From contig OZ316898.1 in assembly GCA_973895155.1 (NCBI GenBank), positions 5,009,079 to 5,073,078 of the forward strand: 64,000 bases of DNA, in the 5' to 3' direction. Shown one piece after another: positions 6,925 to 7,508 of the stretch. The position numbers and the translations under genes are program-made. The notes beneath the pieces are model-generated. The model saw only the letters and a program-made list of their open reading frames with translations. It made no database searches and had not been told where the DNA came from. Origin of the DNA: Marsupella aquatica. Its lineage: Eukaryota > Plantae > Marchantiophyta. The first letter of the stretch is position 1, and the number at the start of each line of letters is the position of its first letter.

Positions 6925-7333
6925 ACTTACTGTGGAAGGAGCCGCGCCTTGTTGGCCTCATCAGCTGACCAACTGCATGACATGATCGCCTTGTCGAGAT
7001 TTCAAAGTAGCCAGATTGCGCGGTTGCTCGTACACCCACACCTCTTGCACACAACCTCCTCTTCCGAGATCCAAATCTCTCGATGTTTGAGTGCACCAAG
7101 TGTGGGTGCATGAGCAACTACGTGATCTAACACACAGATTAAGACTGCACTTGCATGTGGCCCAGATCTACAATCCTCTCTTCCTCTCTTCTCTTCACAT
7201 AGATGTACTCAGCAAATGCTCCGACTTTGCATCCGCTTCTCCAAAAGGAGTGCTTCAAGCCCCAAGGGCCTGGGCTACCGGTTGCTTGAGGAACACTTAG
7301 TTCCTTCTACGAACGTAAGGCACTTCGTCATCC
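6925..7333 (-). pseudogene. Degenerate NLR NB-ARC (winged-helix/MHD region) relic, colinear with exon 4 of the HNL genes
   Basis: 7198-7215 is identical (18 nt) to 16099-16116. 7240-7285 matches 16141-16186 at 36/46 nt (QPVAQALGA*STPFG vs QRVDQALAAWSTAYG). 7321-7333 is identical to 16270-16282 (DDEV). 7009-7044 matches the MHD region at 28/36. A minus-strand GTAAGT donor at 6930 sits in phase 0 at the same distance from the MHD motif as the exon-4 donor of copy 1. Confidence 0.85.
7013..7128 (-). ncRNA. Candidate pre-miRNA/hairpin 1, stem derived from NLR MHD-motif coding sequence
   Basis: Arms 7013-7050 and 7091-7128 pair without gaps at 33/38 positions on the + strand or 32/38 on the - strand (counting G:U), around a 40-nt loop. 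7100-7129 reads VWVHEQLRDL. Strand is inferred; there are no expression data. Confidence 0.55.
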
Positions 7334-7380
7334 TCAGCGTCAGACCAGGCCCTAGACAGCACAAACTAGGTGACAGTAGT

Positions 7381-7508
7381 GGCTAGATCACGCTGCAACT
7401 CGTGCACACATACCTCTTCACACTCCTCTTCTCTTTCGAGATCCAAATAATTGAAGTGAGGTGTAGGTGCACAAGGTGTGGGTGCACGAACAGCTACGAG
7501 ATCTGGCC
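7381..7508 (-). ncRNA. Candidate pre-miRNA/hairpin 2 (tandem paralogue of hairpin 1)
   Basis: Arms 7381-7415 and 7474-7508 pair without gaps at 28/35 (+) or 29/35 (-). The loop shares CCTCTT..CAC..CCTC..TT.CGAGATCCAAAT with hairpin 1. 7476-7508 reads VWVHEQLRDLA. Confidence 0.5.

Follow-up and report, generated by a model that had tools for sequence, protein, structure and literature searches.

The hairpin locus and its NLR neighbours

The stretch of liverwort DNA analysed here (64,000 nucleotides, hereafter the window) carries three NLR genes on the minus strand and, to the left of them, two fold-backs, H1 (7013-7128) and H2 (7381-7508). The fold-backs had been pointed out in a sequence-only reading of the window, and both were recovered by a repeat search and by RNA folding (Table 1). 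The same reading had called the neighbouring genes hydrolase-NLRs. The NB-ARC domain (E 6.8e-26) and the LRR were borne out, whereas the N-terminal domains (18385-19206, 34303-35064 and 47704-48531) gave only sub-threshold Pfam matches (PGAP1, Abhydrolase_6, Abhydrolase_1 and DUF676), gathered around one short stretch. A hydrolase-type N-terminus is therefore plausible but not firm for these genes. In the protein collection the NB-ARC domain has its closest relatives in the leafy liverwort Calypogeia fissa, at about 45% identity. Overall the three NLR units are 86-94% identical. The 63-nt neighbourhood of their MHD codons differs at 2-8 positions and a 36-nt MHD core (16008-16043, 31874-31909 and 45352-45387) is invariant across the three paralogues, a stretch too short for its invariance to be significant alone.

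Table 1. Features of the hairpin locus and the neighbouring NLR genes, in positions of the window
Feature	Position	Strand or orientation	Remarks
NB-ARC relic (ARC2 to MHD, C-terminal part)	6916-7293	-	~380 nt; stops and ~100-nt insertion
H1 5' arm	7013-7054	+ strand antisense to NLR mRNA	Codons decayed: VWVYEQPRNLA
H1 loop	7055-7086		5-bp apex palindrome; 21-nt stretch from 5'-arm end into loop, 90% like H2
H1 3' arm	7087-7128	Sense copy	Reads VWVHEQLRDL; stop six codons upstream
Inter-hairpin spacer	7129-7380		Holds upstream part of NB-ARC relic
H2 5' arm	7381-7425	Antisense copy	Codons decayed: VCVHELQRDLA
H2 loop and upper stem	7426-7464		Basis: RNA folding
H2 3' arm	7465-7508	Sense copy	Reads VWVHEQLRDLA
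NLR1	14214-19206	-	N-terminal domain (weak alpha/beta-hydrolase matches), NB-ARC, then LRR
NLR1 MHD codons, candidate target	16012-16044	-	IWVHEHLRDLA
NLR2 (NLR1-paralogous unit)	29908-35064	-
NLR2 MHD codons, candidate target	31878-31910	-	Same as NLR1 over 36-nt core
NLR3 (NLR1-paralogous unit)	43632-48531	-
NLR3 MHD codons, candidate target	45356-45388	-	Same over 36-nt core

The hairpins lie in repeat-rich intergenic DNA, with no ORF or gene in their surroundings and with short tandem repeats and satellites on their flanks. On its right the locus borders on the left end of an intergenic module (7552-9646), a second copy of which (23525-24716) has no hairpin beside it. Within the module, 7552-8179 and 23525-24125 align at 79%, and after them comes a 147-nt satellite, at 9008-9510 in the first copy and at 24242-24716 in the second. 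Just past the satellite of the second copy, at 24763-25239, there is a long inverted repeat with arms of ~165 nt (~90% complementary) set ~146 nt apart, which has the look of a MITE or a long hairpin and bears no homology to NLR sequence.

Origin of the hairpins from an NB-ARC relic

The DNA in which H1 is embedded is the remnant of an NLR gene. With the NLR1 NB-ARC exon as the tblastn query, the relic corresponded to residues 277-365 of the NLR1 NB-ARC domain (E 6e-4), and no further NLR part was detected in 1-13500; by blastn, 7193-7285 aligns with 16093-16186 at 72%. The ~100 extra nucleotides inside the relic are an inverted (sense) copy of the MHD segment together with the loop. All four arms derive from NB-ARC MHD codons, as the sequence-only reading had maintained, with matches to the MHD region over 26-36 nt. 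Its figures were reproduced exactly, both for the reverse complement of 7103-7128 against 16016-16041, 31882-31907 and 45360-45385 (23/26) and for the reverse complement of 7479-7508 against the three NLR MHD sites (26/30). In direct orientation the 5' arms match the same sites at 22/28 (H1) and 26/32 (H2). Since the NLR genes are encoded on the minus strand, the plus strand at their MHD sites is antisense to the mRNA, and it follows that transcription of either strand of the locus would place one arm of each hairpin antisense to NLR mRNA.

The proposal that the locus was born by inverted duplication of an NLR fragment also held, as the arms are oppositely oriented and the flanking relic is colinear with the NB-ARC domain. 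Since all four arms have GTG TGG GTG (VWV) where the neighbouring genes have ATA TGG GTG (IWV), the parent was a different paralogue. H1 and H2 are linked by direct repeats at an offset of 372-376 nt and were correctly said to share loop and flank sequence (79% over 47 nt in the 3' arms, 90% over 21 nt in the loop). The asymmetric loop core has the same orientation in both, and H2 is therefore a tandem, not an inverted, duplicate of the whole hairpin. The coding sequence of NLR1 and NLR3 has a 5-bp inverted repeat of its own where the hairpin apex falls, and it is possibly at such a short palindrome that a fold-back or template switch started the inverted duplication. The history at the DNA level is nevertheless secure, and runs from an NLR relic through inverted duplication of the MHD segment to tandem duplication.

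The birth of MIRNA genes by inverted duplication of their targets (the model of Allen et al. 2004) has been reviewed, and the same birth signature has been reported for MIR472, MIR825, MIR1885, MIR6025, MIR1510, MIR2089, MIR5163 and MIR9863 (PMC5026261). At the present locus H1 sits colinearly in the relic and the homology of the arms to the NLR family extends past 21 nt, which together are the signature of an NLR-derived MIRNA born in this way (PMC5026261).

An inert pseudogene would have passed through comparable steps, with a replication fold-back forming a palindrome in a dead NB-ARC fragment, followed by tandem duplication and neutral decay, and with no product. Consistent with such a history, the four arms are roughly as distant from one another as from the NLR genes (24-29/36), and their core identity to the neighbouring NLRs (72-81%) is close to that of the remainder of the relic (72%). 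The repeat-rich intergenic setting, with no gene nearby, also fits an inert relic.

Predicted folds and candidate small RNAs

When both strands were folded, H1 and H2 proved more stable than their shuffled counterparts on plus and minus alike, with none of 200 dinucleotide shuffles as stable and z-scores of -5.2 to -7.0 overall. The folding energy of H1 is -53.8 kcal/mol on the plus strand and -63.8 kcal/mol on the minus strand (z about -6.9 on each), and that of H2 is -55.3 and -54.0 kcal/mol respectively (z -5.2 and -5.3). The repeat search gave H1 arms of 42 nt with 76% Watson-Crick pairing around a loop of 32 nt. In an ungapped 55-nt register H1 has 35 Watson-Crick pairs plus 4-6 G:U pairs, and H2 has 36 plus 3-4. 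These counts hold no G:U enrichment on either strand, and neither they nor the folding energies give a clear strand preference for either hairpin. H1 and H2 are predicted to form as two local hairpins on the plus strand, whereas in the 641-nt minus-strand fold long-range cross pairing is predicted to be favoured over the two local hairpins. The H1 3' arm and the H2 5' arm can pair with each other, looping out the spacer.

The complementarity between arms of different hairpins (78% and 73%) is as high as that inside H1 (76%). Counted over the core of 36 nt, the two arms of a hairpin agree at 25/36 and 26/36, the homologous arms of H1 and H2 at 25/36 and 27/36, and arms compared across the hairpins at 27/36 and 24/36. 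Since pairing within a hairpin thus equals both cross-hairpin pairing and the identity of the copies, there is no surplus of pairing beyond what shared ancestry provides. Covariation between H1 and H2 comprises one compensatory pair and three one-sided changes, too few to count, and the loop is conserved at least as strongly as the arms, which is atypical for MIRNA precursors. Pairing as good across the hairpins as within them, and the single compensatory change, are again in keeping with an inert relic.

The MIRNA criteria drawn up by Axtell and Meyers in 2018 reportedly call for a single fold-back of no more than 300 nt without secondary stems or large loops within the duplex, for no more than five mismatched duplex positions of which no more than three lie in asymmetric bulges, and for precise excision of a 20-24-nt miRNA/miRNA* duplex with 2-nt 3' overhangs in replicate libraries. 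The fold-back of H1 spans ~116-124 nt and that of H2 ~128 nt, and in each the lower 30-35 bp form an unbroken stem. The candidate duplexes lack large asymmetric bulges, and their symmetric unpaired positions number 2-4 in the H1 registers and 5, equal to the limit, in H2. In their predicted folds, H1 and H2 agree with the structural criteria for plant MIRNA precursors. The base of the stem is ~15 nt below the 21-mer proposed for H1, a distance that suits base-to-loop processing by DCL1.

Pairing with targets was scored by the standard plant scheme (positions 2-13 doubled, G:U 0.5), a target being accepted at a penalty of ~4 or less with positions 10-11 paired. Two 5'-U 21-mers had been proposed as small RNAs from the sequence, and both exist in the hairpins (at 7120-7100 and 7496-7476), but neither finds an NLR match within three mismatches, and as guides against NLR1-3 they performed poorly, the one from H2 scoring 5.5 and the one from H1, in which position 10 is an A:C mismatch, 6.5. 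The best 21- and 22-mer registers from any arm reach a penalty of 4.0 against NLR1-3 with positions 10-11 paired, which is borderline. The better targets would probably be paralogues encoding VWVHEQLRDL, rather than the neighbouring genes with IWVHEHLRDL. A metagenome scan for such paralogues (degenerate VWVHEQLRDL codons) gave no match, and neither did one for relatives of the locus itself (pattern of loop and 3' arm). No curated miRNA family was matched in an Rfam scan of 5000-10000, where E values up to 1 yielded chance-level matches far below the gathering scores.

The sense and opposite arms have diverged differently. In the NLR frame the sense arms read VWVHEQLRDLT (H1) and VWVHEQLRDLA (H2). 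The ten motif codons hold five differences between them, every one synonymous and in a third position (hypergeometric P 0.0018), and over 16 codons third positions account for nine of 11 differences (binomial P 0.0014), although these comparisons were picked post hoc, after viewing the data, from perhaps half a dozen possible ones and the P values are therefore to be taken loosely. In the opposite arms there are 4-5 amino-acid changes, spread over all codon positions. That the sense arms are themselves coding sequence could be ruled out, as each has a stop (TGA, TAG) six codons upstream and the frame of H2 is closed shortly beyond its arm. Among miRNAs that track NLR motifs, variation limited to wobble positions has been described (PMC5026261). 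Wobble-only variation in sense arms that do not code would indicate that their reverse complement is the guide, and hence that the transcript comes from the minus strand.

Haplotypes, competing readings and known systems

Among the listed public sequencing runs, four contain the locus (X1-X4), none of them recorded as RNA, and their contigs were compared with the window over 4800-8000. X1 and X3 come from organism A, and X2 and X4 from different samples of organism B; X3 resembles Hi-C, with GATC junctions. At the locus X1, X2 and X3 do not differ from the window. X4 provided one contig of 728 nt, single-copy by its depth, in which 37 substitutions and 11 gap letters were counted. Among the changes listed for this contig, those near H1 include an added AGG at 6970 and substitutions at 6980 and 6988, and 31 substitutions fall in 7132-7368, so that the spacer is ~13% divergent. 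None of the 33 listed substitutions (out of 37) falls in 6989-7131, which holds the whole of H1. The listed changes all lie at least 162 nt from the contig ends and, if they were ordered accordingly, the other four substitutions would lie outside ~6984-7388 and hence outside H1. By our own arithmetic, 33 substitutions spread evenly over 6970-7368 would leave 143 nt free of change with a probability of ~4e-7. H2 has at most four substitutions and two indels, a loss of 3 nt at 7415 and a gain of 1 nt after 7447, each of which falls within or adjoins an internal or terminal loop of the predicted fold. The outer flanks of the X4 haplotype are nearly those of the window, with no difference in 5463-6277 and one in 7521-7990.

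With the NLR genes as the outgroup, the window has six derived states and X4 has 15. Both haplotypes thus carry derived changes and resemble two old relic lineages, not a recent conversion from a neighbour. On the same figures, a neighbouring NLR was rejected as the donor of a gene conversion in the X4 spacer, the variants leaving NLR sequence more often than they approach it (15 against 6). The distribution of changes in X4 could nevertheless stem from recombination or gene-conversion boundaries rather than from selection. In X2 the contigs break at 7102-7131 and at 7372-7401, and coverage is higher in the contigs holding the hairpins (66 and 57.5) than in that of the spacer (43.5), depths that would fit a sample with two spacer types and common hairpins. 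Two minor variations were seen beside the locus. Just upstream of the hairpins (6758-6852) is a 52-nt tandem duplication, 93% identical and variable in copy number, at which contigs of X2 and X4 jump back by 73 nt, from 6882 to 6810. Further left, the block 5143-5492 has raised contig depth and, in X2 and X4, contigs with 3-6% variants, and it is probably a dispersed repeat rather than a site of allelic variation.

The asymmetry of the arms and the X4 haplotype pattern are two indirect signs that hint at constraint on the hairpins. We propose that this is a young MIRNA-like or hairpin-RNA locus, the guides of which, taken from the complements of the sense arms, would pair with the MHD codons of NLR mRNAs, a reading to which we assign a probability of about 45%. 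In outline, the MHD-coding segment of an old NLR gene fragment would have been duplicated in inverted orientation to give an imperfect hairpin of ~55 bp, which would then have been duplicated in tandem ~372 nt away. A transcript of the hairpin pair, most likely a minus-strand one, would be processed by a Dicer-like enzyme. The putative guides would be drawn from the reverse complements of 7087-7128 and 7465-7508, would pair with MHD codons in the mRNAs of hydrolase-type NLRs and may lower the levels of these mRNAs. The fuller claim, that a liverwort has independently evolved and kept by selection a two-hairpin small-RNA gene with guides aimed at the MHD codons of hydrolase-type NLRs, is put forward with slightly less confidence.

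That the locus is an inert relic is the main rival reading, taken to be somewhat less likely than the small-RNA reading. The distances among the arms and the lack of surplus pairing described above suit it, but it would not lead one to expect sense arms that differ solely at synonymous third positions over the motif codons beside opposite arms that differ anywhere, nor an unchanged H1 between two divergent stretches of the X4 haplotype. The preservation of the codon pattern in the sense-oriented copies only would also be accounted for if these arms were target sites, in a non-coding plus-strand transcript of a TAS-like or "two-hit" PHAS locus or of a decoy, with the MHD-directed trigger encoded elsewhere. 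The two sites, ~376 nt apart, do flank an NLR-derived spacer, and in seed plants NLR-directed miRNAs are known to trigger non-coding PHAS loci. However, liverworts are not known to have such a trigger, the most variable part between the haplotypes is the spacer, the would-be source of secondary siRNAs, and the hairpin setting of each site would be left unexplained, so that target sites seem improbable.

A purely DNA-level effect, with no role for RNA, is similarly improbable. The palindromes would in that case be fragile or prone to recombination, and would have made the spacer hypermutable and set the boundaries of the X4 block. The divergent block is indeed bounded by both hairpins, and pairing of the H1 3' arm with the H2 5' arm could loop out the spacer. 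Furthermore, the spacer changes in 7132-7368 comprise 11 transitions and 20 transversions, a spectrum atypical for ordinary point mutation and unusual for allelic divergence. Against this, the derived changes in both haplotypes suit two old lineages rather than one burst, and the synonymous-only divergence of the sense arms would have no explanation. A MITE that captured NLR sequence might be suspected from the short terminal inverted arms around a small loop and from the two copies, but is very improbable and was set aside, as the arms are NLR-derived right to their ends, H1 is embedded colinearly in the relic, there is no flanking target-site duplication and only two adjacent copies occur in the 64-kb window.

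If the proposed small-RNA locus is active, it would be an independent NLR-directed locus in a new lineage, acting against a bryophyte-type class of NLR. The link between NLRs and small RNAs has been traced back only to gymnosperms (PMC5026261), in which miR482/2118 first emerged (PMC6132428). The sequence-only reading knew of no description of such an MHD-directed system. This does not apply to seed plants, where the MHDV-encoding region is among the NLR motifs targeted by miRNAs (PMC5026261, Fig. 3) and MHD targeting itself is therefore not new; it agrees with our literature search for liverworts and other bryophytes, in which no report of NLR-directed miRNAs was found. The nucleic-acid target would encode the same protein motif as in the seed-plant MHDV-directed miRNAs, and the origin here would be independent.

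Compared with the young NLR-derived MIRNAs of seed plants, the locus is alike in the homology of its arms to NLR coding sequence beyond the mature length, in its derivation from a conserved NB-ARC motif site next to an expanded tandem NLR family, and in the confinement of variation in the putative guide arm to codon wobble positions. It differs in that it is found in a liverwort, beside NLRs with a hydrolase-like N-terminus, in its two tandem hairpins, in its borderline complementarity to the nearest NLRs and in being known from DNA sequence alone. The miR482/2118 family is directed at the P-loop and its 22-nt members trigger NLR phasiRNAs (PMC6132428, PMC5026261). The proposed logic is the same, with one small RNA on a conserved NLR motif damping many paralogues, but there is no sequence relationship to miR482/2118 and the motif here is MHD, not the P-loop.

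Should the small-RNA reading be true, the damping of NLR families by small RNAs would extend beyond seed plants and could arise wherever such families expand. The locus would then represent a convergent bryophyte solution caught so young that its parent pseudogene, inverted duplication and tandem copy can all still be read; should it be silent, it would still be a clean snapshot of the raw material for such genes. Silencing of paralogues in trans is also known from natural inverted-repeat hpRNA loci that derive from gene fragments, such as the CHS inverted repeats of soybean. As in those loci, siRNAs against family members could arise from a gene fragment duplicated in inverted orientation. 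The arms of the hpRNA loci are long and near-perfect, whereas those described here, at ~55 nt and imperfect, come nearer to the geometry of a MIRNA.
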